Shown here: one piece after another, positions 1-17,033 of the stretch
How the letters are laid out: every line of letters starts with the position of its first letter
How positions within the stretch are numbered: the first letter of the stretch is position 1
NCBI GenBank assembly: GCA_965112735.1
Contig: OZ218965.1
Span: 1,860,001 to 1,924,000, forward strand
Source of the DNA: Phaeosaccion multiseriatum
Lineage: Eukaryota; Protista; Ochrophyta, other classes
Direction of reading: 5' to 3'
DNA length: 64,000 bases
Program-made: the position numbers and the translations under genes
Notes under the pieces: model-generated
The model's database searches: none
What the model was told of the DNA's origin: nothing
The model's input: the letters and a program-made list of their open reading frames with translations, nothing else

Positions 1-3000
1 ACTCGCGCAGACGTCCATACACTCGCTCTGACAGGTGAGGGTACCACTCCTTGATCAACTGCACTCCTGCCATCAGAGTCCCACCGGACGTGTCACTCTG
101 GCTACCGAGTCGCAAGGCACCATCCGCATCCAGTACCCACCCATCACCGCGTAGGTCAGTCAATGATGTGCCCACCGCCGCCGACGATGAACCTGCCTCG
201 GACCGTAGTGGCGGTTCCTCCGACGCCACTGACGATGCCGCCCCTGGCGCAGGCCTGCTGGTGGAATCATCAGCCCCCGCCACGTGGTGGACCTGCAGCT
301 GGCCTGTACGAGGCGGTCGGGGCTCCTGCAACTGTGTCTGACGGCGTCGCGCTACCGCCGCCGGAGCCACCTGCTGCTGTACCGCATTGGACCGCTGAAC
401 CTGCTGAGCTGCCGACGAATCCGCTCGCTTAAAGAGCTCTTCCCGCTGGGCCTTGTGCCGTCGCTGCAATGCCCACTGGCGTTGCTGCCGTGCCTGCTGC
501 TGTGCCGCTTGTAACCGCTTGGCCTGCTGCGTTGCCAACCAGGCTGCTGTCTCCTCCTTCGAGTCCACTCGTGGTGTGTCAGCTCGTCTGGCCGGCACTC
601 GCACTGTCCCCCCAGGAGGGCGCCAAGGGCACGCGACGCTCCCGCGGCACCTGTCGTTGCCCCAAGTCGCTCCCCCAAGCGAGACGAAGCCCTCGGTGAT
701 GCCAGGCGCAGGAGCCGTCAGCGCACAGCTCCCGTCGCAGCGGCAAAACTTGTCGTCGCACTTGCTCATGGCGCTCCAACACTGCTTGCCGATGAACCTG
801 GTCCCACAGCACAGGAGACTCCACAAGCATTGATGCCACTCTCCGACGTTGCCGCTGCAACCGCCCAGCACCCACTCGACTCTGACGACACTGACTCCCC
901 TTCTTGCCGCTGCGCTGCAAATGCTGAAACCGGGCCTTCACTGCCGGCTGAGGCACCAGAGTCGATGGCACCCCCACCTCAGTCCGTGGGTGCGTCAGGG
1001 CCTGCACCTGCACAGCTTGCAGCGGAAGCGCCGTAGCCCCCAGCTCAGCCTCCTCTGGTACCACCGAGCAGCGAACTACAGGCCCCTGCGGTGGGCACCA
1101 GACCGGCTCAGCTCCTGCTTCAGCTTCAGCCGGCTGCTGCGACGCCTCCTCCTCCACCACAGACTCAACCGCCTCCCGCGCCTTGGACCATGGCAGCCTG
1201 CGCTTCACCACACGCCTCACCATCCCGCCAAGAGCACCAAGCCAGGAGGAGGGGGCCGCTGCAGTCTCCGGCATGGTATCTGAAGAAGCCGGCTCAGCGA
1301 GCATGAGCGCGGCCACCTCAGCGCTCGCCTCCGAGTCGAGCAAGCAAGAAGCGGTGCCGATGACCTGCCCAGGAACGACCACAATGACCTGATTGTGGTG
1401 ATTCTGCACTGTGATTCGGTAACTCTGCCCCCCAGCATACACACCATCTTTGTGCGCCACTAGAACCTGCTCGTGCTCCAGCCACCATAGAACGTCCGCC
1501 TCTGCCGCCAAGTGTCCGTGAGCGCCCAGCTCCACCACCGCCTGGACACCCTCAACGATACCCGTAAGCTCGAGGAGAAGGGACCCCGTCTGTCCAGGTC
1601 CCAAGCTCAAAGCCTCCACAGCACGTACCCCCCCAACAGCAGCGTTGCCGTCCACCACTGCCAGCACTTGCACAGCCAAGGCATCGGACGGACGAGCATC
1701 CGACGTGGCCTCCTCCGAAGGAGTCGGAAGTACGTAGAGCTGCTTCGCACGATGATCGACGACTGCCCCTACTTGGGTGAAGAAATCCTGCCCCAAGAAG
1801 ATGGGCCGCGCCAAGTGGTCCACCACATGAAAGGGTAGCACCGGCTGGCACGTCGGCGTGAGTCCCACCTGAAGCCAAACAAGCCCTCTGGACATAGTCT
1901 TGGCACGATTGTCAGCGTAAGACACCTGCACCCCCTTCTGCGTGGCGAGCTCTGACCGCTCCACCGTGCCATCCGCCACCAGTTGATTGAAGCAGGCTGT
2001 CGAGATGCAGCCCGCTCCTGTGCACCCACTGTCCATCAAGGCTGTAAAGGCGCTCTTCTCCACGGCGTCGGCGGCACTGGCATCCCGTGGAGCGGTAGCA
2101 GCCAAGCAATGCCGAGCGTCACTGACCTTCACTGGCGAGCGCACCGTAACCTCAATCGTGTGGCCCCGCCCTGCTGGGACTGCCGTACGACCCGTGGCAG
2201 CCACCGCTTCGGCAATCTCAGCTCTCCGCACTGCTGTCTGCAAGGCGGCCACCCCCCCCGGAGCGTCCTCCATCCGCACACGGTAGAGAGCCAAGGCAGC
2301 GCGTTGCACACACCCCTCACACATATCACACTCACTGTCAACAGCCGACGCACAGGCACAAGCTCCCGGACTGGGGGGCTCCTTGAGCAGAGCGACTCCC
2401 GCGCCAGGCTCCAAGGCTACTGCATGACAAGCACGCACAAACGGATCAAGGGCAAGCGTGTGCAGCCCCGCCTCCTCCGTCAACACCGCCGTGAAAGCAG
2501 CCTCCTGCTGATGCTGCTGTGCTGCTGCTGTCGCACGAGCACGCTGCCTCCGCTGCTTCCTCCGTACCCGCCGTCGAAGAGCTACTGCGCGCCTCGCTGC
2601 ATCCTGCTGCTCCTGTGCCGCCTGCTCGTCACCCTTGCGCAGCGCTGCCTTCGCCTGCTGGGCACGCCGTCTCAACCACTTTGCTGCCACCCTCTGCTCA
2701 GTCCTGCTCCGCCCCTCCGCCGGAGGCACCGCTGGAGACGTCAGCGGCAGGGTCCGAAGGCTCTGCTCCTGCTGCTGAAGCTGAACCTCCTCCTGCTGCT
2801 GAAGCTGAACCTGCCACGCCCACTGTTCATGTTCCCCCGTGGGAGTGAATGGCGGAAGAGATGCTGCCCCGAGCGGTAAGGCCCGCACGAGGCCCATGGC
2901 CTTGGCCTGGCGAGGCGTCACCAGGGAGCACAGCTGCTGAGGCTGAAGCTCATCGCTTGACGGTGGGCTGGCTTTTGCAACCTGGACGGCAGCCTCGACA

Positions 3001-4097
3001 GCATGACCCTGCTGCTGCTCCAATTGCTCCTGCTGCCCCCCCGCCACCTGCGGCTGCTGCTGCAGCAGCTGCTGCTGCTGTCCCAGCCGCTGTTGCCGCT
3101 CCTTCGCCGCACGCAGTGCGCGCTGTTCCGGGAAGGCACACGCACGCACCCGCTCCAAACCCCTTGCATCCATCCAGACAGACTCGTGTTGCGCAACGGT
3201 TGCCGCCTCGCACTCAACCTCCCCCACTGCCGACGGTGGCACCTGCTGCTCCGGACACTCACCCGCAACGACTGCATCCTCCTGGCGCAGAGGCAGCGGC
3301 AGCGCGACGTCAGGTCCGCTCGACGGCTCGACGGCAGAGCCGGGCTGCGGTGCTTCGACTAAGCACACGGAGCGTACCACTGGACACGGCTGCTGCTGCT
3401 GCTGCTGCTGCTGCTCCGGCGGCGGCAGCTGCTCGACTGCGGAAGCCGCTGGCGCAGCCTCCTGGTGCGCGCCCTCCACGACTACCTCTACTGCACGCTG
3501 CGCCTGCTGCTGTACCGCCGTCATCGCCGTGTGCTCACCAGCAACGACTGCATCCGGGCCGTCAGTGCCCCGCGACTGCTCGACCACAGAGCGTACCACA
3601 GGACCCGGCTGCTGCGCTAGCTGCCGCTCCGGCTGCTGGCGCTGCGGCTGCGGCAGCTGCCGCTCCGACGCTGGCAGCTGCTCGACCGCGGACGGCGCAG
3701 GCACAGCCTCTCTGTGCGCACCCTCCACGACTGCCTCTACGACACGGCGCTGCTGCTGCTGCTGCTGCTGCTGCAGCTGCTGCTGCTGCAGCTGCTGCTG
3801 CTGTTGCTGTTGCCGTTGTAGCCGAGCACGTTTGAGTCTGTCGCCACACCACATGTCACTCCGATAAACTCTGATGGCAGGTGACTCCTGCTCTACACGA
3901 CTAGCCTGACCGCTCCTACGCTGAGCGTCGGCATGGGGCAAAGGTGGGTCTGACAAACAAGATAGGTGCGAAGTACATTCATTATCTTCTACACTGCTCT
4001 TGCCCGCCCTCCCCCCCTGTTCCCCCACGCCGACGCTATCCTCACGCGCTGCGGTCGTGGGCCCCAGGGCTGCTGGCCAAGCAGCCCCGGGGCACCG
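1..4097 (-). CDS. pol: Retrotransposon Pol polyprotein N-terminal part (Gln-rich spacer, aspartic protease, long linker), partial
   Basis: Open and in frame with gag from 4097 to 579; DSG protease motif; after a 1-nt shift at the G6 run 608-613 the frame (TVRVPARRADTP...LIKEWYPHLSERVYGRLRE) stays open to the window edge. Confidence 0.8.
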
Positions 4098-4398
4098 TCA
4101 GCCTTCGAACTTGAACCCGTCCTGCGCCGCCAGAGTGCCCGCCACCATTGCTGCTACGGCTTCAGACATGTCGGACTCCTGGTGCTGCGCTCTGACCGCC
4201 TGCCGCCGCTGCACGCGACTCACAATGCCGAGCAGCTCCTCACGCGTAGCGGGGATGGCGTTGCATTCTATCCATCCATGGCCGGCGCGGCGACAAGTCA
4301 TGCAGTTAAATGGGGCATTGCCGTTGCCACGCTGCTTCACCGAGCCGTGGAACAGCAAGGGCCGCTGCTGGGTGGGCGTGAGCCGCGGCTGCTGCGCC

Positions 4399-4433
<35 letters not shown>

Positions 4434-6286
4434 TGCATTCACCCCCACCTCCTGTGACGGCTGATGGTCCAGATGCTGCTCCACCGAATTCACGGCCACT
4501 TCCAGATGCTGCTCCACCGCATTCACGGCCACTCCCCCGCGCGGAGTGCGCAGACCACCACCACCACCACCACGGGCCCGCGTAGCCCCACCAGTAGAAG
4601 AGAGCGTAAGTGGGCTACCAGCCTGGAGCACCCGAGTCGCGGAAGGAAATGCCTTCTGGAAGGCGGCGTAGAAATCACTCCACGAGGGAGTCGCCGACTC
4701 CCAGCGCAGCCAGAAGTTGGTCATGCCGTCAGTTAATGGCAACGAGCCGTGACGAAGCCGAATCTCGACCTCTGGCCGCAGCACCGCCAGCAGGCCCGTA
4801 ACCAAGGCTTGCTCATCCGTGGCCTGCCCCGTCACCTGCGCCAGACACAGAGAGAGTTCCGCCAGCTTGGTGAGCAGCCTGGCGAGCGCCTGGTTCACCT
4901 CGGCAGGAACGGTGGACGCTTCCAGAGGCTTGGCCTCCCGCACCAACGTCTGGACAAGCTGCTGGAGGCCGTCTCGCGCAACAGGAACGCCGAAGAGACG
5001 CAACAGACACCTCGCGAGCAATTGGAACTGTGCACTCTCCGTCTCCCACTCCAATGTGACGTGCTGGTCGCCCTCCATCCACGACGCACCCTTCTGAGCC
5101 TCCGCCAGGACAGTGGCCCGATCCACTGCACCCAAGTCGGCCAGCACTCGCTGCTCCATCACCCGCCCTTGGCCCGGAAGCACGGACCCAGTAGAAGTCA
5201 AGATCTCCTGTCCTTGCAGAATGCTCACCCAGTTGTACATGCGTGCGAGCACCACAGCACGAGGATGAGGCTGTCCAGCCGCATCGAATAGAGAGGGAAG
5301 TTTCTGCTCCTGGAGCACACGGATAGCACCCACGGGCAGCGTGATCGTCTGCACCGTATGACGGGCGGGCGCCTGCAGCACATCCAGGGCCTGCTGCCGT
5401 GCCCGCTCCCGCTCCCGTTCCATGTCCCGCTGTAGCATATCCTTAACCTGCTGCTGCAGCACCTCTACCCCCCCCGGTGCGGCATCCTTAACCTGCTGGA
5501 GCTGCGCCGCTAACAGCTCCCGCTGCAACGTCTCCACCTCCAACTGGGCAGCACCCTCAGGCGGCCGCTTCGGCGGCGGCTGCGCCGCCATCTGTCGCTG
5601 CAGCTCCGCCGCCACCTGCTGCTGCAGCTCCACCGCAAACTCCCGCTGCTGCTCCGCCCCCGCGAGAGCCGCAGCACCTCCAGTTCCCGCTGGAGGGCCG
5701 CCGTCTCCGCCTTGCTCTCCCGCAGTTGGGCCGCCATGAGCTGCGCAGCTTGGTGCTGCGTCAGCATCTCAAGCCCCTCCTGGAGAACCCGCGTGTCCTC
5801 CTGCTCCGGTGTCTTCTCTCCCTCCGCTGGCTGATCCACCACCCGAGCCCCGCCAGACGCACCAACAAGAGGGACCAAGGGCGTGCCAACCACATCCCAC
5901 ACCGTGCTCTCCTCCTGGCCCACCGACTCTGCATCCCCCGAGTGGAAGGAAACCTCCGACGCCGCCACCGTCAGCGGCCTCACCCCAGCAGCAGGAGGGG
6001 AAGCGGCAGCAGCCGTAATCGCAGACCCCTCAAAAAAAGAGGGCGACTCCAGGGACTCCTCCCCCCGACGCAACGCCGCCCGCACACGGTCCACAGCCCC
6101 AGGGCTGGCAGTGACCTCCGCAGGAGGAGCAGCAGCTTCCGATACCACAGACCCCACGTCCGCAGCACCACCATCAGCTCCACCGCCCTCAGCGTCACTC
6201 GTAGCGCCCTCCGCCGATGAAAGACTCAGGAAGTCCCCCTCCTCAGCCCTGGCCACCCTAGCAGCGTGGAACCGCAGGAAGTCCAT
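4098..6286 (-). CDS. gag: Retrotransposon Gag (one 1-nt frameshift at the G-run 5657-5661)
   Basis: ORFs 6307-5510 and 5633-4098 join across a G5 run (...RLSR/AEQQREFAVELQ...); coiled-coil N-terminal region; C-terminal CCHC zinc knuckle; TGA at 4100-4098. Confidence 0.8.
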
Positions 6287-6405
6287 CCCCGCCTCAGCCA
6301 GTGCCACCCTAGCAAGCCCAAAGCTGTCTACGGCCTAAAGCTGGGCAGCTGGAAGCAAAGCTCAAGCCAACACAATAAATCAGCCTCAAAGCTGGATCTC
6401 AGACC

Positions 6406-6624
6406 TGTGTCTTTCGGGTCTTCCGGGTTGTCGAAACTACCGACAGCTAGCCTCAAAGCCAAGCTAGAGCAGAGCAGAAGCTGAAGCAAGCACCCGGAAG
6501 CCAGCCCACACGCAGGCTGCGCTTCCTTTCTTTTATTACTGATTTACCGTCTAGTTGGCCCGTTTTCCGGCCGTTACACTACTGATTGGGTCCCCAAGGG
6601 ACCCCAACTAGGCCACTTCTAACA
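6406..6624 (-). repeat. Putative 5' LTR (~219 bp, TGTTAG...GACACA on the minus strand)
   Basis: Starts TGT exactly where host repeat sequence (cattctacagggcatg, compare ~8488) is interrupted; contains AATAAA on the minus strand at ~6532-6537. The inner boundary is inferred because the second LTR is not in the window. Confidence 0.55.
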
Positions 6625-8990
6625 CATTCTACAGGGCATGGGCGCTGCGAAAGGATGCAAACTGCGATGTGCAGGGGAAGAGCACATGGGGTGGTGCGAT
6701 GCATGTATGGGCAGGGGGGGGAGTGAGTTCAAGGCCAATCAGCCCACACCGGAAAGTAAGAGAAGTGAGGAAGCCTTCAGCTAGGCTAGCCGACAACAAG
6801 TGAAGAATGCAAGCAAGTAGGGGTGGCTGAAGGAGGGAACGGGACAGCCCATACACGAATCGAGTAAATACAAGCAACATCTCGGGGGCGGGCAGAGTGG
6901 CTAGGGCTAATCCATTTCTCGCTCCCCCTCATCCCCTCGAGATCCAAGAAGTGGCCAGCCAGCAGTAGTGCTCTTTGCATGGGGTGAAGTGGAAAGGGCT
7001 TCACGTCACCGACTCACCGAACACGCAAGGAGACCGCCGCACCCCACGAGGCAGTTCTGCAAGGCGAGCAAAGAGCGGCAAGCAATACGGATGGAATGCT
7101 CGAAAGTCACGAACCAGTGCCCAAGCAACGCCCACGCCAAGGCACTTCGGGGTACTACAGCACGCTGGCAGGCGAGTGGTCACAGTCAGACCAAGCGATG
7201 GGCTGACAATGAACCCGCCCCGCACAACACCACCCGCGCCGAAGCCAACCACGCTTCACTGTTCATCAAGCACCAGGCTTCGTTCACAACAAGTCAAGCT
7301 CTACGTACATTAAAGTTGGCGCCCTGACACAGCCACACGAGCGAGGGTACAGAGGCCCCCAGGCATGTAACGGCAGAAACAATTGGCACCACAAGCCATC
7401 GCCGAAGAGAAGCAGTCCAAGCGGGGAGGTGCAACAGGCAGGTACAGGTAGCAACGACAGAGCCAAGGGGACGAGGTAGCGGGAGGGGGGGGGGCAAGAG
7501 CAGCCACACGTGAGAGGAGGTCACGGGAGCACAGACAATCGAAGTTCTCCTTCGAAGCAGCATGCAAATTATTCTACAGGGCATGGGCGCTGCGATGTGC
7601 AGGGGAAGAGCACATGGGTGGTGCGATGCATGTATGGGCAGGGGGGGGAGTGAGTTCAAGGCCAAACAGCCCACACCGGAAAGTAAGAGAAGTGAGGAAG
7701 CCTTTAGCTAGGCTAGCCGACAACAAGTGAAGAATGCAAGCAACTAGGGTAGAAGGAGGGAACGGGACAGCCCACACACGAGTCGAGCAAGTACAAGCAA
7801 CATGTGGGGGGGGGGGGCAGAGTTGTTAGGGCTAATCTATTTTACTCGTCTCCCCATCCCCTCGAGATCCAAGAACTGGCCAGCCAGCAGTAGTGCTCTT
7901 TGGATGGGGCGAGCTGGAAAGGGCTTCACGTCACCGACTCACATCACACGCGTCATCGATGCAAAGCACGTCGTCGCAGTCCTGCAAGGCGGGCAAAGAG
8001 CAGCAAGCAATAGGGATGAAGTGTTCGAAAGTCATGATCAAGCCACGCCCACGCAAATGCACTTCGGGGTTCTTCAGCACACTGGCAGGCGAGTGGTCAC
8101 AGTCAGACCAAGCGATGGGCTGACAATGAACCCGCCCCGCACAACACCACCTGCGCCGAAGCCAACCACGCGTCACTGTTCATCAAGCACCAGGCTTTCG
8201 TTCACAACAAGTCAAGCTCTACGTACCTTGAAGGTGGAGTCCTGATACAGCCACACGAGCGAGGGTACAGAGGCCCCCAGGCATGTAACGGCAGAAACAA
8301 TTGGCACCACAAGCCATCGCCGAAGAGCAGCAGTCCAAGCGGGGAGGTGCAACAGGCAGGTACAGGTAGCAACGACAGAGCCAAGGGGACGAGGTAGCGG
8401 GAGGGGGGGGGGGCAAGAGCAGCCACACGTGAGAGGAGGTCACGGGGAGCACAGACAATCGAAGTTCTCCTTCGAAGCAGCATGCACATTCTACAGGGCA
8501 TGGGCGCTGCGGAAGGATGCAAACTGCGATGTGCAGGGGAAGAGCACATGGAGTGGTGCGATGGATGCAGAGGGCAGGGGGGGGAGTGAGTTCAAGGTCA
8601 ATCAGCCCACACCGGAAAGGAAGAGAAATGAGGAAGCCTCGAGCTAGGCTACTAGCTAGGCTAGCCGACAACAAGTGAAGAATGCAAGCAACTAGGGGTG
8701 GCTGAAGGAGGGAACGGGACAGCCCACACACGAGTCGAGCAAGTACAAGCAACATCTCGTGGGGTGGGGGGCAGAGTTGCTAGGGCTAAACCATTTCTCG
8801 CTCACCCTCATCCCCTCCTCGAGATCCAAGAACTGGCCAACCAACAGAAGTGCTCTTTGCATGGAGCGAGCTGGAAAGGGCTTCACGTCACCGACTCACC
8901 TGACACGACTTGCGCAGGTGTGCACCAATGATGCAATCTACGTTGCAGTTCTGCAAGGCGAGCAAAGAGAAGCAAGCAATAGGGATGAGG
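6625..8990. repeat. Tandem duplication, ~920-945-bp unit, ~2.5 copies, each full unit carrying two micro-exons
   Basis: Anchor ctacagggcatgggcgctgcg recurs at ~6629, ~7574 and ~8491; long near-identical stretches between the copies. Confidence 0.95.
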
Positions 8991-11900
8991 GGACACGTTG
9001 GAGGGGTTCCAGTGACGCTTTCCACGACGTTCGATGGGCATCAGTCTGGTCAAGTCAAAGTACCTAAAAAGAAGTCAAGGACTTTCGACAAACGACTCGG
9101 ACGAAGAGGGGCGGTGCAGACATCAACAGTTGCGATGACCATACACAAGTCTGTGTTCACAAGAGCAGAAGAGAGCAGTGACAAGGGTGAAGGTCTGATG
9201 CTTAGACTTACGATAAATGTCTTGGACTGGGAGAGCCGGGAAGGACGAGAAGCGTTGTCCACGTCCGCAGCACCCACGGACGGGGGGGGGGGACGGAGAT
9301 TGCCCAGTCCCGGCGGTGCAAGGGTGGGGGCGAAGGGGGGCGAGGGTCCCACCAGCCAGCAAGGAGGAGTGAGACGAGCCATGAAGTCAAGGGACAGCAG
9401 CCAGTGTTAGGAAGGGGACGAGGAGATAAGAAAGCGGAGCCGGAGGAGCCCGTGCATGGCCAAGGGCAGGGCAAGGAAGGGGGTGGGGGGGCAGGGAAAT
9501 CGAATAGAGGAGTAACGCACAGAGGAAGCACAGATGAGTGAGTCGCTCGCCCGTTATGCCACTACCCCACCCTTGACTCACGCACAAGCAAGCCGCTCCT
9601 CACAGACAGGTTTCAATCCCACCACTCTTCACTGCCTGCCTGAAGAAGCGCAGAGCAGGAAGATCAAGACCAGCAGCTGCCTAGGGAGGAGCAGCAAGGC
9701 AGGGGCACACGGGCACCCCCTCCTACGTAGCGCAGACATGCTGCGCTCGGACGCACCCGACATGCTCCATTGGAAGCGTCGTCGCAAATGACGGGGGAGG
9801 TGCAGTCGTAGCAAGTATCACTGTCGAGTCCTGATATGGTTCCTCCTGCCTCATAACATAATTCAGCAAAGGCTGATGTGATGACCATCATGGCACATCA
9901 CGCCCAGTGGCAGTGAGAGCGGCAGAAAGGTAAGAGGGGAGCGAGCTTAGATGCCAGCAAACAAGGTGCGTGGGCGAGCAGGGGCGAAACCGCAATAGAC
10001 GCTGGAGGCCACGCAACCTAAGCCAGTAGAGTATTACACATCATCAGCCAGGGCAATACATCCCTTCCTCACCACAGTTAGGGACAATAGCCTGGTCCGC
10101 GTTGGCCGCAAAAGGGCAGCTGGAAGGAGCAGAGGAAGCAAAGAGGCCAGAGAGAAGGGAGGTGTAGTCAGCGCGAGCTCCTCCACGGAAGCAGGAAGAC
10201 ATCAGCCAGGCAGGGCACTTGGCCACACACAGGAGGGAGCCGGCCAAGTCACAAACCCGCACGCACGGGAAAACATGACAAGCAGGGGGCGACGATGCCA
10301 TGACAGAGAGACGCTGGGGGGGCACATTCACGCAAACTCGCTCCTTACTTGTCACAAGCGTCTCCAACTCCGTCTTCCTCGGCATCCTCTTGGTTGGGGT
10401 TGTCTACGTCAGGGCAGCTGCGAGGACCAAGGAGCAACAAGCACAGGGGGACAATGTAGTCGCTCAGTGTGTCGACCCTCTACAGGGAGACGCTAGGGGG
10501 TACACGCACGCGATCAGCACGCACACACACATCCACACCATATTCATTCCCACTCCAGTCGGTCCACAGGTTTGAGCACTCACTTGTCGAGATGGTTCGT
10601 AATACCGTCCCCGTCGATGTCTGCAAGCACGAGACGCCGTGGCAGGAGGAGACGGGGAGCGACCCAGCAGCAAAAGACGAAGAAAAGTGGGTCAGACTAG
10701 GAGAGCACTTCCAGTAAAAGAATTTGAGAGGAGGAGGAAGAGGAGGAACGCGAGCGCACAAGACGAGGGGCAACGCGCTGCAGATGTAGAGTCTAAGTTT
10801 GGACGTGCACAATGGAGTGCTTCTCCCCGGGCCCTGCCCTTTCTCACCACACGCGTCTCCTATTCCGTCATTATTGCTGTCTTGTTGGTCGGGGTTGGCT
10901 GTGTCCGGGCAGCTGCGAGGAGTCAGCACGAGGGGGGGAGGAAGTTGTGTAGTCAGTGTGGACCCTCTTCGACACACGGGGGCGTTGCGCACGCACACAC
11001 ATTTGTTGCAGTCGCACTTGCATGTCAAGTGGAGCAGAGAGGAGGGCATTGACTAGGCCAAAACCAAAGACTAGCTAGACACAGAGAGGCGCTGGGGGGG
11101 GCACACGCACGCACGCACGCACGCACGGCGGACAGTCATGAAAAGCAGGGCTACTACCGCAGGCCACAGAGAAATGCGCTGCTGGGGGTGCGCACCCAGG
11201 CCACGCAGCACACACCCACACGCACAAGCAACACGCGATCCACTCCCGTCAAATCGGTCCGAAATGTATAGAATGAATTAAACCACTCACTTGTCCCAAG
11301 GGTCGAAAACGCTGTCCCCGTCGGTGTCTGCAATCAGCAGGGCCGCCACCGCCGCACGAGGCGCACGCCATGGCAGGAGGGGGTGGGGAGCGGCCCAGCA
11401 GAGCATACACAAGGCAAGCGCATGAGAGAAACGATTGTCAGACTGGGGGGGGCAATGAGTAGGGCAGCCACGACAAAAGAATCCGAAGAGCTCACTGGCT
11501 GTGCGGCCATGAAAAGTAAGCAGCGCGTATCGAGGAGCGACGAGATGAAGGTGCGCAAGTCATCCTGAGCTCCGTCCCTTTCCTCACCATCTCACTCGTC
11601 CTTACCTTTACACACTCGAGTGAGTGTTGGGCTAAAAGTGTTGCAGGGATGCACACGGGCGGGGTTCAAGAAGGGAAAGGATGTTTACCGAACAGCAACA
11701 CGAGAGCATCAACGCACAAAGACAGGAGCAAAGGGAGGGGAAGAGGGATGTGAGCGCGAGGGTGTGGGATTGGCGCTCCTTGCCTTCTTGGTCAACTCAG
11801 CACGGGCAGGAGAGTAAATGCACTCCTCAAAGGCACTCTGCCTGCGATTACCCACTTACCAAACTCCTTGCCCCGTGGCCACGCAGCATGAAGCACCATT

Positions 11901-14531
11901 CCCTAGAGTCTATTGGCCACAGCCGAGAGTGATACAAGGAAACGTGGGAGACAGGCGCGGATGGATGGTCAGTCATCGTATCACACAGCACGTCATCTGG
12001 GGCGTAGCTATAAGCGTGTCTCTTGTACTTCCCCTTGCATGGACTGGCCCACTTCCCTTTACACACACACACCTCGAGACTACTGCAGGCCGTTTGAGCG
12101 GTGCAGATGGCGGCCGAATTGTCATGAAAGTCGGTAGACTGTGTGGGGGTTGACGATGCGAGTCAGCAAGAGGCCAGGGGCACAGAGGGGATGTAAGGAG
12201 AGGAGCAAGGCTTGAGGCATGGGCCGTTCAGCGGCGGTGCGACAGAAGTAAGCCACAGAAATAGCCAGTTAGGAGAGCGAACGTGGGCTGAGACGAATAA
12301 AGCACAAAACAGGAGTAAGGTTGGCGCAAGTTGCGATCGAATTGCCTTCAAAGCAAGTCCGCAGACTGGTTCGAGGGGAGCAGGGTGTGTGCTCAAGAGA
12401 AAAGAGGGCGGGTGTGCGAGGTCAGCAGAGGGGCACAGGGGGGAGGTCTGGGGTGTGTACTGCCAGTGGTACGACACAAGTAAGATACGCAATTGGCCAA
12501 GCAGGCCGCAAGAGCGGACTGAGAACTCACGCGACAGGAGCTCTCCCCTGAGCAGGTGGCGGTCGAAGTGTCTTGGAAAATGGCACTCTGTGTGGAGCAG
12601 GCAGGGTGTGTGTTGATGAGAAAAGAGGGCAGAAGACCAGCAGAGCGAGGGGCACAGGGGCACAATATCATCCGCCCGTCCACTTTTGATTCGTCAGGGC
12701 CCAGCAGGTGCACGCAAAGACAGAGGGAGAGGGCCGAGGGTACAAGGCTTGCTCGCAAGGAGGCGAGAAACGCACAGGAGCGAGGAGCGGAAGTGACAAA
12801 CAGAAAGGAGGCCAACACACACAGCGAGGAGACCAACCGAACATCGACATGCAGAGCAAGCATGAGAAAATGGGGTGGGAAGGAGGGGGCGCGAGAAGGT
12901 GGAGAGGCACCGCAACGCCCCGTCCCCGTTCATGCGTGTGTAACGTCAACCCCCTCATACCAAAACCGACTCACCTCGCACCTACCGCTTTCCGTGCAGT
13001 CAACAGCGCAGTTCTTCAGGGTGGGCAGCATTGTGAGGTGGGGACAAGCGAGAGAGAGAGGGGCGGAGTGAGCAGAGTCGACATGATGCATCAGTATGAA
13101 CGCAGCCGAAGGAGGGGGGGGGAGAAGGGGGACCCGACCCTGGCCGACAGCGACGGCGCAGGCTTAGACTGGCACGAAGGTCAGGTAGGTGCTAAAGCTG
13201 TCGCAAAGAATGCAGAACAGCTGCACACTACTATAATGAAAGGCGAATCAAGGCCACACTCAGAACCACTTCTCAGCCCCTGCCTGGCGTGTGAGTCCAA
13301 ACGGCGGATGGAACGAGCGATAGCAAACACTCACCCTGAATGTGGTGCCCTGGGACGTCGAAGAAGCAATGCAGCCATCAGGAAAAAATGCGAAGAGCGT
13401 GGCAGTGAATAGCAGCAGCGTCAGCCGAAGGAGGGTGGCGAGGGAGCCAACCACAGGCCGCCGTGAGGACGAGCAGTAGACAGGGGGCACAGGGGGCACG
13501 TTCGCGGTGTGGCCCAGCCAACCAATCGTTGCGGATGTTTTGGTGAGTCGTGACCGTGGCATGAGGGAAGGCGAGCGGTTTGTGGCAGGGAAGAAGGGAG
13601 GCAGCAAAGCGCAACGCGATCAAGTGGGGCGACGGAATAAAAGTCAGTCATGTGCCCACTTCCTCGAAAGAGAGATTGGTACGGTGAAGGCGTTGACACC
13701 GCCTAGCCCCTCTTCCGAGGAGGCGGACAGCAACTCTAGCCTACACGCAGATAGATGCAGGGGGTACAGGAAGAGTGGCAGGCAACAGGCTGTTGGTGTA
13801 GAGAGAGAGCCTGACTGGCTGTAGTGGCAAAGAGCGCAGGAAGTGCATTGGGCGGGGCGAGTCAAGCACTTGCTTGGTGAGAAGCGCTGGTGAAAGGCGC
13901 AACCGCACCCACCTGGCAGGCCGCGTGTCCCCTACACGGAAGTGGATTGAGGGGGGTCACAGAAGGGCAGGTGCACGTGTCGGAGGATGTGTCGTATGCT
14001 CCACCGCTGAGCCTGCAGATCCCCTCCATGATAATGCCTGTAAGTCATGGTAGGTCCAGGGGAAGGAGGTGAGCAAAAGGCGAGGAGCGGCAAAGGAGAC
14101 AAGAAGCATAAGCGTCCAGCCAATGGGCATGCCGATTACAGAGCAGCAGGGGCACAGGGCTGAGATTGAGTCTGAGGCACACGCTGTCCAGGTGTCTACG
14201 CAACCCGGCCGGGAGGGGCGGAGGCTAGGCAGGCAGCTTAGCTACGGCCGGGGGGTTGAGGCGAAGCTCTGAAGGAGCGACTGGAGCAGCTACTACATGT
14301 GTTATGGAAGGCGATGGCGAGGGTGTCTAGTCTAGCTACTGGACGGCGCGCAGCGGATCACGGCCGCACCAGCCACGCCCCACGCAGCAGCCAGCCCCTT
14401 TGGAACTTACAGGAAAGGTCCCCTGGAGAGAGACATGCGAGAGCTGCGGGTGGTGTTGCTGCGAGGAGGAGGCACAGCACCAGACTGAGGGCCCACCTCC
14501 CGAAGCTGTTCTGCTTCACGGGGGAGAGCAT
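7018..14531 (-). CDS. Secreted Cys-rich repeat protein with thrombospondin type-3 repeats, micro-exon gene (at least 20 exons; 3' end lies beyond the retrotransposon)
   Basis: GT-AG, phase-consistent exons: 14531-14411, 14037-13913, 13349-13335, 13013-12975, 12587-12531, 12138-12073, 11909-11860, 11631-11606, 11327-11291, 10912-10848, 10620-10584, 10417-10349, 10119-10073, 9845-9757, 9226-9212, 8950-8900, 8241-8227, 7981-7943, 7323-7309, 7056-7018. Signal peptide WALSLVLCLLLAATPPAALA; TSP3 motifs DTDGDSVFDPWDNCPDTANPDQQDSNNDGIGDACD and DNCPDVDNPNQEDAEEDGVGDACDNCP; repeats of xxxFx-[ND]CxVxC(x5-9)C. Confidence 0.8.
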
Positions 14532-15700: not shown

Positions 15701-16270
15701 CGCCGCTCACAAGAGAGCGGAGCAGGGAAGACGGGGAAATATGGCAGCAGCTGCGAAGGATGGATGTTGGGATATCTCCCTCTCTGGAGACTAGCGTGGT
15801 ACTTGCAAGGGTTGTGGGAAAGCGTCTTATTAGCTACACCATGTTAAAGAGGAGGGAAGGGGAGGGAACGGCGATATAGAGATCGATATCCAGTGTCGAC
15901 ATCGATTTATCTCAGCACTGAGTCCGAGCGCCGGGGGTTACGCTTCTCCGAGACCTTCTAAGAAATGATTTCGGCCGCCCGCGAGGTTTGTCTGGCTCCT
16001 GGCTTGCTTCTTCGAATGATTCTAAAGACCTTACAGTTGTAGCTGTGAGAGAAAGGGGAAAGACACCAAAAAAAAGGGGGTTCCAATCGACCCCTGACAC
16101 GCTATCGCCCACGTTCTCGATAGCGCGCCGGCTGGCGCCGGCGTCGGTCCCTGACATGGTTCTGAGACAGGCCAGCCCAGAAGCAGGAAGCAGCCTTGGC
16201 CCTCATCATTGCCTTGCTTTCCCCCAGAACCTGGAACCTGCCTTCGGCCCCTGACAAGGTTCTGAGGCGA

Positions 16271-16365
16271 CCCTGGCCAGAACCTGGAACCTGGCCGGCT
16301 GACCCTGGCCAGAACCTGGAACCTGGCCGGCTGACGCCGGCCAGAACCTGGAACCCAGGTTCTAC
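16271..16365. repeat. Minisatellite, ~31-bp unit, ~3 copies
   Basis: cctggccagaacctggaacctggccggctga repeated; a related copy at ~16225. Confidence 0.85.
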
Positions 16366-16518
16366 CAGGTGCAGGGGGACCTTATCATTGCCTTATTACA
16401 TGGCCTTTTCTCTATTGCTTTAGGCAAGGGTACTTACGAAAACGAGTCGTTACTGTGATTTCGCGGTTGAGTGGCACTTTTACAACGCCAAATGACGATT
16501 TTTTTGACGACGTTTGAC

Positions 16519-17033
16519 GACGTTTGACGACGCTTTCGGCCCTGGAAGAGGTTATCAGATTACTGATTACGGCCGGCGCAGCCGGCCTGATTACTGATTA
16601 CTGTCGGCGCCAGCCGGCCTGATTACTGATTATGGCGCCAGCCGGGCCTGATTACTGATTATGGCCGGCGCCAGCCGGGTCTGATTACTGATTATGACCG
16701 GCGCCAGCCGGCCTGATTACTGATTATGACGGACGCTAGCCGGCCTGATTACTGATTATTGGCGCCAGCCGGCCTGATCACTGATTATGGTCGGCGAATA
16801 CTGTAACCTCTTCCAGGGCCGAGACGCTTTAGCCCCCTATTTGACGCCCTTGACGCCTTTTGACGCCCTTTGACGCCCTTTGACGCACTTTGACGCCCTT
16901 TTATCTTAATTCGCCTTAATTTCGTCTAAAAAAAATCACGTAAAAAAAAAATCACGGAAAAGGGCGTAAAAGGGCGTCAAAAGGCGTCAAAGGGCGTCAA
17001 ATAGGGGGCTAAAATAAAGCGTCGTCAAACGTC
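16519..17033. mobile_element. Foldback-like element with inverted arms of (TTTGACGCCC)n, left arm interrupted by the MITE
   Basis: Left arm gacgtttgacgacgcttt|agccccctatttgacgccc... is the reverse complement of ...gggcgtcaaatagggggctaaaataaagcgtcgtcaaacgtc (ends 17033). Confidence 0.65.
16536..16822. mobile_element. MITE-like insertion: 19-bp perfect TIRs, 7-bp TSD, internal minisatellite
   Basis: TCGGCCCTGGAAGAGGTTA (16536-16554) and TAACCTCTTCCAGGGCCGA (16804-16822); flanking direct repeat GACGCTT (16529-16535, 16823-16829); interior is 7 full plus 1 partial copies of gattactgattat..ggcgccagccggcct. Confidence 0.8.

Follow-up and report, generated by a model that had tools for sequence, protein, structure and literature searches.

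The window, a 64,000-nt stretch of DNA from Phaeosaccion multiseriatum, includes part of a gene with a tandem array of ~930-bp units, each with one 15-nt and one 36-51-nt GT-AG exon in phase 0-0, in which the loop-coding bases of the exons are 4-8 times more divergent than the flanking near-identical introns. This array probably arose by recent tandem amplification, with its units converting one another and its Cys-loop codons under diversifying selection. The unit with both its exons would have been amplified to at least 8 copies, most likely via unequal crossing-over and not long ago on an evolutionary scale (introns diverge by 3-6%); patches would still be exchanged between units by gene conversion, which would keep introns, splice sites, and scaffold codons alike. 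Between the fixed Cys codons, loop codons would be held different and rapidly replaced, a turnover ascribed to diversifying selection acting on residues exposed at a putative binding or recognition surface. Selection, and not a mutational process, would account for the exon excess.

Gene model and predicted protein

The gene lies on the minus strand (C16:1874531-1845841) and was modeled by hand on GT-AG borders as 38 exons with an intact ORF of 868 aa; the acceptor of exon 14 was picked to preserve the reading frame. The exons are presumably spliced as drawn; the four runs containing the locus, none recorded as RNA, have DNA-like, even coverage over introns without spliced joints. The intact ORF, exon indels in multiples of three, and splice sites kept in paralogs support the view that the segments behave as coding exons. 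An earlier note on this DNA proposed that all array exons are phase 0-0, and this holds in the 38-exon model without an internal stop. The features are listed in Table 1.

Table 1. Features of the micro-exon gene (window positions unless C16 is given)
Feature	Position	Strand	Basis or remark
Exon 1, start codon and predicted signal peptide (MLSPVKQNSFGRWALSLVLCLLLAATPPAALA...)	14411..14531	-	read from sequence
Exon 2, Cys-rich	13913..14037	-	5' part strongly unlike contig-3 paralog
Exon 3, older 15-nt micro-exon GTTFR, array-short-exon type	13335..13349	-	introns non-homologous
Exon 4, older 39-nt long-type exon NCAVDCTESGRCE	12975..13013	-	
Exon 5, unsplit 57-nt, 19-residue Cys repeat SAIFQDTSTATCSGESSCR	12531..12587	-	
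Exon 6, unsplit Cys repeat, 66 nt	12073..12138	-	
Exon 7	11860..11909	-	
Exon 8	11606..11631	-	
Exons 9-13, thrombospondin type-3 calcium-binding repeats	10073..11327	-	Pfam TSP_3
Exons 9-13 individually	11327-11291, 10912-10848, 10620-10584, 10417-10349, 10119-10073	-	
Exon 14, Cys-rich linker preceding array	9757..9872	-	conserved in paralogs, 9-nt indel
Short exon S0 (SKTFI)	9212..9226	-	read from sequence, exon model
Long exon L1, 51 nt, NCNVDCIIGAHLRKSCQ	8900..8950	-	exact translation
Intron A, unit 1, 658 nt	8242..8899	-	unit alignment, genome search
Fossil 57-nt repeat exon in unit-1 intron A (extent approximate)	8467..8523	-	homology to live exons
Short exon S1 (DSTFK)	8227..8241	-	exact translation
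Intron B, unit 1, 245 nt	7982..8226	-	unit alignment, genome search
Long exon L2 DCDDVLCIDDACD	7943..7981	-	exact translation
Intron A, unit 2	7324..7942	-	unit alignment, genome search
Short exon S2 (GANFN)	7309..7323	-	exact translation
Intron B, unit 2	7057..7308	-	unit alignment, genome search
Long exon L3 NCLVGCGGLLACS	7018..7056	-	exact translation
Intron A of unit 3, 5' part, cut by retrotransposon	6625..7017	-	
Gypsy LTR retrotransposon, 12.45 kb, C16:1866624-1854173	1..6624 (window part)	-	same orientation as gene
Remainder of unit-3 intron A, units 3-7 (exons 21-30), exons 31-38	C16:1854172-1845841		outside window

The encoded domains are, in order, a signal peptide, Cys repeats of 18-19 residues, thrombospondin type-3 (TSP type-3) repeats, the array, and a C-terminal VWD-like domain. 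Since exon 5 is an unsplit Cys repeat, the short and long exon types jointly make up one repeat. When spliced, exons 9-13 match Pfam TSP_3 (PF02412) in three stretches with 69.5 bits (cut-off 25; E = 1.9e-19), while single exons reach only 15.8-21.1 bits; TSP_3 is the sole family found in a Pfam search of the gene.

The C-terminal domain is VWD-like by fold only, according to an AlphaFold model made from an alignment (A1) of its family that includes the last exon of the gene. The sequence modeled is that of a relative, P0001, which is 32% identical over A1 (phmmer match with 35% identity, E = 1.7e-25); the named relatives of the domain are diatoms, so that the lineage is probably stramenopile, like that of the brown algae. 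The model (pLDDT 80.1, pTM 0.80) was compared with 48,161 chains, and the best 19 matches are all VWD domains, among them those of MUC5B, VWF, FCGBP, MUC2, RGMB, vitellogenin, and Cypridina luciferase (Z 8.7-11.4, 124-155 residues aligned, rmsd 2.6-4.0), with the next, unrelated match at Z 4.7. Pfam has no family for the last exon, the penultimate exon, or the relatives P0001-P0003. The GDPH autocleavage motif is absent: the Asp-Pro bond is kept in G-D-P-M here and G-D-P-x in relatives, but the His is missing.

The protein is probably secreted, as judged from its predicted signal peptide. The earlier suggestion of an algal surface or recognition protein stands insofar as signal peptide, TSP type-3 repeats, and VWD-like fold support a secreted, extracellular-matrix-type protein; its recognition role is conjectural, and the protein may bind variable ligands.

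Organization of the array

The array, which the earlier note took to have about three units, has at least 8; it is broken by a retrotransposon that cuts the third in-window unit at 6624, and it picks up again upstream of the window. The six exons first read (SKTFI, NCNVDCIIGAHLRKSCQ, DSTFK, DCDDVLCIDDACD, GANFN, and NCLVGCGGLLACS) are exact in translation, on the minus strand, and all AG/GT-bordered. The donor side of the intron had been called essentially invariant, and a 28-nt motif there, exact at 8899, 7942, and 7017, is indeed unchanged in six of the seven array copies, with one mismatch in the seventh. A DNA unitig spans 8878-9050, across L1, with 0 mismatches.

Long exons had been said to keep little besides three Cys codons; the Cys codons are kept, but so are an N/D preceding the first Cys, a Val, and an Ala preceding the last. 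The 18-residue array repeat reads x-A-N-F-N followed by N/D-C-x-V-x-C-loop-A-C-x, split over two symmetric exons; for this repeat, "loop" and "surface" are terms suggested by the Cys pattern. The short exons of units 2-7 (GANFN, YANFN, YTNFN, HAIFN) are far closer to each other than is the pair at 8241-8227 and 7323-7309 first compared.

The retrotransposon, a Gypsy element in the intron following exon 20, has 196-bp LTRs (TG..CA; 5' LTR at 6624-6429), carries ORFs of 556, 1172, and 2176 aa, and shows an AATG target-site duplication. An AATAAA lies in the LTR, read depth over the LTR is 30-60 times higher, and the gene copy split by the element may now be truncated or silenced. A full-length, sense-oriented element inside the gene would agree with the array being a decaying or never-expressed duplication, possibly a pseudogene since the insertion, whose exons are chance open segments, of which GC-rich DNA has many. 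Such a history is improbable. The LTRs are identical over 197 of 197 aligned bases, which marks the element as very young and hence too young to have shaped the exon/intron pattern; neutral decay would give equal exon and intron divergence, in place of the four- to eightfold excess; and none of the 16 array exons has lost its AG/GT borders, its multiple-of-three length, or its stop-free frame. A 310-codon C-terminal ORF is under purifying selection in three paralogs. A true dead exon, furthermore, looks different: the fossil repeat exon in intron A has an in-frame TAG at 8493-8491, its equivalents lie at ~7574-7590 (cut by a 17-nt deletion) and 6625-6661, and it evolves like the intron around it (pi = 0.036). 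Its homologs are live exons of the contig-6 paralog together with exons 31-32.

Divergence of exons and introns

Formal alignment of 7 units, a comparison that could have refuted the claim that exon divergence exceeds local intron divergence, upholds it. Introns have a nucleotide diversity (pi) of 0.048, whereas the 15-nt exon reaches 0.187 and the long exon 0.367; only 1.8% of 15-column intron windows reach 0.187, and none of 851 reaches the long-exon value (maximum 0.164 at equal size). Variable columns number 25 of 42 in the long exon versus 103 of 933 in introns (Fisher p = 4e-13), and the short exon also differs from introns (Fisher p = 0.004). The short exons at 8241-8227 and 7323-7309 differ at 5 of 15 bases, as first counted by eye; the count of ~2 substitutions and one indel in the adjacent 150 nt needs correction to 2 substitutions and no indel upstream, and 3 substitutions and one indel downstream. 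Length differences among exons are all multiples of three, versus 7 of 25 intron gap runs. The youngest unit pair differs over 57 nt of exon by 6 replacement changes and no silent one, and over 866 nt of introns by 33 changes.

Many loop codons differ at 2-3 bases. Point substitution alone would need a very large acceleration to explain such changes.

Paralogs lie on contigs 3 and 6, and comparison with those on contig 3 extends the contrast beyond the array. Whole genes, including all introns, are 85-89% identical; splice sites are kept in three paralogs, and the contig-3 paralogs keep reading frame as well. Relative to the latter, N-terminal exons have d of 0.138 and 0.170 and introns 0.064 and 0.069 (p = 4e-11), with exon 2 at 0.221 and the next intron at 0.068. 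L1 differs from its paralogs by d = 0.36-0.39 and a 12-nt indel, while the TSP_3 exons 9-13 (d = 0.043-0.135) are not hypervariable. Between paralogs, 70 of 263 codons are replaced; pN is 0.150, synonymous change at unchanged residues 0.086, and intron divergence 0.064. Within exons, pN does not differ significantly from NG86 pS (0.150 vs 0.108, p = 0.18; 0.29 vs 0.27 in the array), so the case for selection takes introns, together with silent sites where the residue is unchanged, as its neutral reference. In the C-terminal 310 codons of the same gene pair, pN is 0.015-0.027 and pS 0.034-0.074, with intron d of 0.05-0.06.

The same contrast could result from concerted evolution only, with old, diverged exons set among introns homogenized by gene conversion and unequal crossing-over; exon cores would interrupt or escape the tracts, for which purifying selection against homogenized exons or a heterology block would suffice. 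The units do form a strong recombination mosaic, with an Rm of at least 21 and incompatibility in 54% of informative site pairs, and non-adjacent units have short stretches of exon in common, such as GTGCTTTGC in L2 and L6. Loop codons look saturated, and the silent rate of N-terminal exons is above that of C-terminal exons (p = 0.007), which leaves room for older exon divergence or multi-base events. Concerted evolution as sole cause is nevertheless unlikely. Unit number varies from 8 here to 1-2 in paralogs, and amplification must therefore have been recent, with new units that began with identical exons. The three Cys codons are TGC, TGC, and TGT in 13 of 13 young long exons, sharing an unpreferred third codon that is TGC in older copies such as exon 4. 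The replacement-only change of the youngest pair and the near-intron rate of silent change at unchanged residues also argue against it, and tracts would need to end no more than 6-15 nt from Cys codons in every unit. The earlier note had offered positive selection or intron-biased gene conversion; both probably act jointly, since faster, mostly amino-acid-changing exon divergence coexists with conversion among units.

Diversifying selection can also be set against a dedicated device, whether an exon-targeted mutator, copying from silent donor cassettes, or regulated combinatorial or mutually exclusive splicing. Cassettes that are all phase 0-0 and extreme, multi-base loop changes would be in keeping with such a device, which is nonetheless very improbable: scaffold codons show no acceleration at their silent sites, and the fossil exon, which on this reading would be transcribed but unspliced, is not hypervariable. 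Donor cassettes find no support, since L1, L2, and L3 are each unique in the genome when up to 3 mismatches are allowed. The upstream intron and the units show no docking/selector complementarity; a Dscam-type cluster was rejected, as the 3 short inverted pairs in 6624-9760 include none that recurs in every unit.

The near-identity of the introns raises the thought that they are themselves the functional or mobile part, as introner-type mobile introns or as hosts of a small RNA such as a box C/D snoRNA, for which intron B has a TGATGA ... CTGA arrangement. This is barely credible. In a whole-genome search, copies of unit-1 intron A (86-100% identical) occur in 3 loci only, and introns A and B are confined to this gene and its contig-3 and contig-6 paralogs; introners were rejected on this ground, and intron likeness reflects segmental duplication, because the paralogous genes are alike throughout. 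A box C/D snoRNA was likewise rejected: box C has mutated, reading TGGTGA in units 4 and 6, box D is missing in the contig-6 paralog, and a search of Rfam yielded nothing at E up to 5. ORFs within the introns match no Pfam family, and non-triplet indels between units disrupt their frames.

Comparison with known systems

Arthropod Dscam-hv genes have tandem duplicated alternative exons for variable extracellular parts, with mutually exclusive splicing directed by docking/selector RNA pairing. Dscam cassettes are alternatives for one position, whereas the cassettes of this gene add up as repeats in a solenoid-like array. The micro-exon genes (MEGs) of Schistosoma encode secreted products, mostly from very short symmetric exons that allow in-frame skipping, and their variation at the RNA level through alternative splicing is documented. 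Symmetric 15-nt exons of this kind are present in the gene model; there is no homology to MEGs, however, and the protein described here has large conventional domains.

Conotoxin genes are alike in their fixed Cys framework with quick, mostly non-synonymous change in between, in coding divergence above that of neighboring sequence, and in LTR elements in adjacent introns (PMC10561478). In contrast, they are small, three-exon, single-domain genes that diversify among gene copies rather than through intragenic cassettes; they have no sequence or architectural kinship to the gene considered here, which has no sign of a toxin.

The candidate receptors of Ectocarpus, of the LRR-ROCO and NB-ARC-TPR types, have one repeat per exon (Zambounis et al., 2012, PMC3341825; ROCO follow-up, PMC11378527). 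They have in common with this gene repeats on symmetric phase-0 exons in tandem exon-plus-intron units, recent exon duplication or shuffling, dead repeat exons within introns, positive selection on exposed repeat residues (probable here), and cassette numbers that differ among paralogs (PMC3341825). The differences lie in the repeat, which here is an orphan Cys loop of 18-19 residues on two micro-exons (15 nt and 36-51 nt) instead of an LRR or TPR on one 72-nt exon, and in the protein, which is predicted to be secreted, with TSP3 and VWD-like domains; by Pfam, the gene has no LRR or TPR repeats joined to a ROC-COR, kinase, or NB-ARC signaling domain. The gene is not a member of the brown-algal exon-shuffled receptors but works similarly, with the tandem phase-0 exon cassettes and, probably, the positively selected residues that characterize them.

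Extent of the array and its copies

Each unit of the array spans about 930 bp (intron A, a 15-nt short exon, intron B and a long exon of 36-51 nt, all exons in phase 0). Direct-repeat analysis places the units 917-969 bp apart, and the donor-side intron sequence described as essentially invariant in the earlier note recurs as exact copies of a 28-nt motif. Motif scans that included the flanks found seven 15-nt exons and eight long exons with intron borders identical in type, so the array comprises at least eight units; the tandem units described earlier are thus real, and the count of three gives way to the higher number. Searched against the whole genome, intron A (619 nt) and intron B (252 nt) have copies in three places only. 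Coordinates of these and the other features are collected in the table.

Coordinates of features of the locus and its paralogs. Positions are those of the window unless a contig is named; C16 is the contig of the window, which spans C16:1860001-1924000.
Feature	Position	Strand	Remark
Tandem units	6623 to about 9000	-	
Long exons L1, L2, L3	8900-8950, 7943-7981, 7018-7056	-	
28-nt donor-side motif	8899, 7942, 7017		exact copies
Intron A/B copies	the array within the window		
Intron A/B copies	C16:1849113-1854172		same contig, 6-11 kb ahead of window start
Intron A/B copies	contig 3, 5176044-5186502 and 5217666-5223664; contig 6		paralogous loci; weaker match on contig 6
Dead 57-nt (fossil) exon, unit 1	about 8467-8523	-	in intron A
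Second dead repeat exon	about 12290-12355	-	in intron between exons 5 and 6
17-nt block GTGCTTGATGAACAGTG	8165-8181, 7248-7264	-	in intron B
Insertion in paralog	contig 3, 5210001-5230000, against window 12531-12587	- (paralog)	253 nt
Gypsy LTR retrotransposon	C16:1866624-1854173		window 1-6624 and beyond
Last exon	L035:5844-6608	-	L035, flanking segment on C16
Short tandem repeat cluster	16269-17001		about 2 kb upstream of start codon
32-bp unit, 7.6 copies	16558-16796		
32-bp unit	16269-16355		
10-bp TTTGACG-type units			in the same cluster
(GT)n microsatellite	C16:1847699-1847749		in intron between exons 35 and 36

In kilobase-scale alignments the gene as a whole, exons and introns alike, matches its contig-3 copies at 85-89% identity; the introns are therefore alike through segmental and tandem duplication in the recent past, not through special conservation. 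In one contig-3 paralog the insertion listed in the table is an extra tandem 57-nt exon 5 with its intron, and entire modules (TSP3 to L1; post-array exons) occur there in two to three copies, so that paralogs vary in the number of both cassettes and modules. The long (GT)n microsatellite is present at the contig-6 locus also.

Four sequencing runs from one sample, none of them recorded as RNA, were examined over 6200-12100 and gave DNA-like unitigs in which introns are evenly covered and the gene has no spliced joints; these unitigs confirm the assembled sequence, including exon-intron borders (e.g. 8878-9050). They also carry many single-base alternatives at about half depth, several of which match other units or paralogs: 7322-7323 takes the TAC of units 3 and 4, for instance, and 9224 the contig-3 form. 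Given such matches, the alternatives are mostly cross-mapping, and heterozygosity is not demonstrated.

Evidence for coding exons

Comparative evidence argues that the array segments are coding. A manual model of 38 exons, all with GT-AG borders, runs from an ATG and typical signal peptide to a stop codon and encodes 868 aa, 70 of them Cys, without an internal stop. Older copies of the exon pair, with unrelated introns, lie upstream (GTTFR followed by NCAVDCTESGRCE), and unsplit 57-nt versions of the repeat are also present (SAIFQDTSTATCSGESSCR; exons 31 and 32); short and long exon therefore form one repeat of 18-19 residues. Exons 9-13, when spliced, match Pfam TSP_3 at 69.5 bits (cut-off 25; E = 1.9e-19), each exon alone falling under the cut-off. 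In alignments with the contig-3 paralogs AG and GT are kept at every exon, and exon indels are all 3, 9 or 12 nt; among the 25 gap runs within introns of the unit alignment, only 7 have a length divisible by 3.

A fossil repeat exon within intron A serves as a comparison. Exons 31-32 and a live 57-nt repeat exon of the contig-6 paralog are homologues of the intron A sequence following CATCGCAG; this fossil has an in-frame TAG and no donor site in each unit of the array, and in unit 2 a 17-nt deletion as well. Its diversity (0.036) is the same as that of the intron, so hypervariability belongs to the live exons, not to exon-derived sequence generally. The second dead repeat exon resembles the exon-6 type in degenerate form (TCTGCGGACTTGCTTTGA...) and is interrupted by an in-frame stop. 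Genes of this kind, here with 15-nt exons, would escape standard ORF tracks and gene callers.

Diversity within the array

Seven units (intron A, short exon, intron B and the following long exon) were aligned after removal of a retrotransposon. Nucleotide diversity (pi) is 0.044 in intron A, 0.058 in intron B and 0.048 over all 933 intron columns, against 0.187 in the 15-nt exon and 0.367 in the long exon. All 851 intron windows of 42 columns lie below the long exon (maximum pi 0.164), and 1.8% of 15-column intron windows are as high as the short exon. The long exon varies at 25/42 columns and the short exon at 6/15, compared with 103/933 for introns (Fisher p = 4e-13 and 0.004, respectively). 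The earlier note had counted by eye 5 differences in 15 bases between two short exons beside nearly unchanged intron; a recount agrees, with 2 substitutions in the 150 nt upstream and 3 substitutions plus 1 indel in the 150 nt downstream, and its claim that exon divergence exceeds local intron divergence is upheld in the formal alignment.

Across the array the scaffold codons for Phe, three Cys, Val and Ala are fixed, and pairwise pN reaches 0.5-0.7 at seven or eight codons; any one cassette offers few sites. In the youngest unit pair, the 57 exon nt contain 6 replacement changes and no silent one, compared with 33/866 in its introns (p = 0.03). The four-gamete test fails for 801 of the 1485 informative site pairs among units (Rm at least 21); this recombination mosaic indicates that gene conversion is active and helps to hold introns and scaffold codons alike. 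Selection on the loops may favour novelty or may act against homogenisation.

Rates between paralogs

Compared with the contig-3 copy C3b over 15 exons, exons differ at 109/791 sites (0.138) and introns at 271/4216 (0.064; p = 4e-11); for the second contig-3 copy, C3a, the values over 8 exons are 0.170 and 0.069. The exon excess is centred on the short and long Cys-loop exons (0.27-0.44) and a few others, and TSP3 exons diverge at or under the intron rate (0.043). Over 263 aligned codons pN is 0.150 and NG86 pS 0.108, a within-exon contrast that alone is not significant; replacements affect 70 of these codons, 23 of which differ at two or three bases. At codons whose amino acid is kept, silent change (11 in 128 sites, or 0.086) is near the intron rate, and from this agreement of introns and silent sites the neutral level is about 0.05-0.09. 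Replacement change in the N-terminal part is thus about twice neutral, and in loop codons far higher. In these gene pairs, pN over the C-terminal 310 codons is 0.015-0.027 and pS 0.034-0.074, with the adjoining intron at 0.05-0.06; judged from these rates, the C-terminal domain is constrained.

The third Cys codon is TGC in older copies, and all 13 young long exons, contig 3 included, use TGC, TGC, TGT. This shared usage argues for a recent common origin of the young cassettes and speaks weakly against exon-wide hypermutation; a test on scaffold codons (P = 0.03-0.09) is suggestive only. The sequence comparisons point to three causes that probably produce the pattern jointly: amplification in the recent past, conversion that still continues, and diversifying selection acting on the loop residues.

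The ALTERNATIVES examined were mobile introns, intronic small RNAs, intron proteins, donor cassettes, docking/selector pairing and pseudogene decay. Introners or other mobile introns are ruled out, intron copies being confined to paralogs and the genes being segmental duplicates. A snoRNA or other known intronic RNA is rejected: a search of Rfam found no match, and the box-C-like TGATGA is mutated in two units. For a protein encoded in the intron, Pfam likewise had no match, and the frames are broken between units. Copying from silent donor cassettes is rejected because L1-L3 are unique in the genome at up to 3 mismatches, and a search for docking and selector pairing of the Dscam type found none. 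Pseudogene decay would give equal exon and intron rates, and the observed rates are unequal.

Even the contig-6 paralog, diverged by roughly 30% and with an intron B that otherwise aligns poorly, keeps the 17-nt block of intron B. One base of the block is mutated in units 4 and 6; the block could be a branch site or splicing element.

A retrotransposon in the array

The array is broken at 6624 by a 12,452-bp Gypsy LTR retrotransposon in gene-sense orientation, with 196-bp TG..CA LTRs (matching at 197/197 aligned bases), the target-site duplication AATG and long intact ORFs of 556, 1172 and 2176 aa. The insertion point lies exactly within the fossil exon of unit-3 intron A. DNA reads cover the LTR 30-60 times as deeply as the gene. 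The LTR contains AATAAA, which could end host transcripts, and with so young an element in sense orientation this gene copy may have been disabled very recently.

The predicted protein

In the model, a signal peptide is followed in order by Cys repeats, thrombospondin type-3 calcium-binding repeats, a Cys-rich linker, the array (eight split and two unsplit repeats), Cys-rich exons and a C-terminal domain of roughly 310 residues. Such a predicted set of domains is typical of secreted proteins of the matrix or of adhesion. Searches of Pfam and PDB with four to five array repeats in spliced form gave no credible hit (best PDB E-value 0.033), and the Cys repeat is therefore called an orphan.

A search of 1.84 billion representatives with the last exon (255 aa) recovered 81 relatives at E up to 1e-3, with identities of 25-43%. 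These are diatom and metagenome proteins (the three with organism names being diatom transcriptome proteins from Stephanopyxis, Proboscia and Thalassionema), and the match falls mostly at the C-terminus, after varied N-terminal parts that include subtilase, CBM (CBM4_9) and gametolysin M11 peptidase domains. The Cys repeat was found in none of the 81, so no expressed array homologue was found among them.

The C-terminal family has no match in Pfam; its conserved motifs include NTFAACSRKWYD, HVEYRQ and, at the start, G-D-P-x. An alignment of the family that included the last exon gave a model, built on a relative 32% identical to that exon, with pLDDT 80 and pTM 0.80. Foldseek against PDB returned weak rows only for this model (RGMB and VWF at the top, E about 0.03); an exhaustive VIA-align structural search placed 19 VWD domains first (Z 8.7-11.4), followed by Z 4.7. 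On the structural model, the domain is predicted to be a VWD-like family without prior annotation. Its G-D-P-M start resembles the GDPH site of mucins and RGMs, without the His.

Comparison with known systems

It is rare for exons to evolve several times faster than the introns of their own gene, and such exons usually signal an arms race, self/non-self recognition or mate recognition. The locus has internal controls (near-neutral introns, an intron-like dead exon, a constrained C-terminal domain and three paralogs), so the acceleration can be assigned to a few loop codons within an invariant cysteine framework. Tiny symmetric exons are also found in schistosome micro-exon genes. The locus suggests that tandem amplification of exon cassettes with loop diversification may be a general route by which this alga evolves secreted binding proteins. 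That it belongs to a genome-wide variable-receptor system, with secreted Cys-loop, LNR and LRR families built from symmetric micro-exon cassettes, diversified in the germline and further by combinatorial regulated splicing or somatic rearrangement, is considered very improbable; if true, each cell or strain would have its own surface repertoire, an algal analogue of Dscam or lamprey variable lymphocyte receptors.

Conotoxins, like the present gene, combine a fixed Cys framework with fast-changing loops (PMC10561478). In the LRR-ROCO and NB-ARC-TPR genes of Ectocarpus each repeat occupies one symmetric exon, exons have been recently duplicated and shuffled, dead repeat exons lie in introns and exposed residues are positively selected (PMC3341825). 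This is the closest described system; its logic is common to the present gene but its fold and signalling domains are not, and the present gene would provisionally extend the proposal for brown-algal LRR/TPR receptors to an orphan Cys-repeat/TSP3/VWD architecture.
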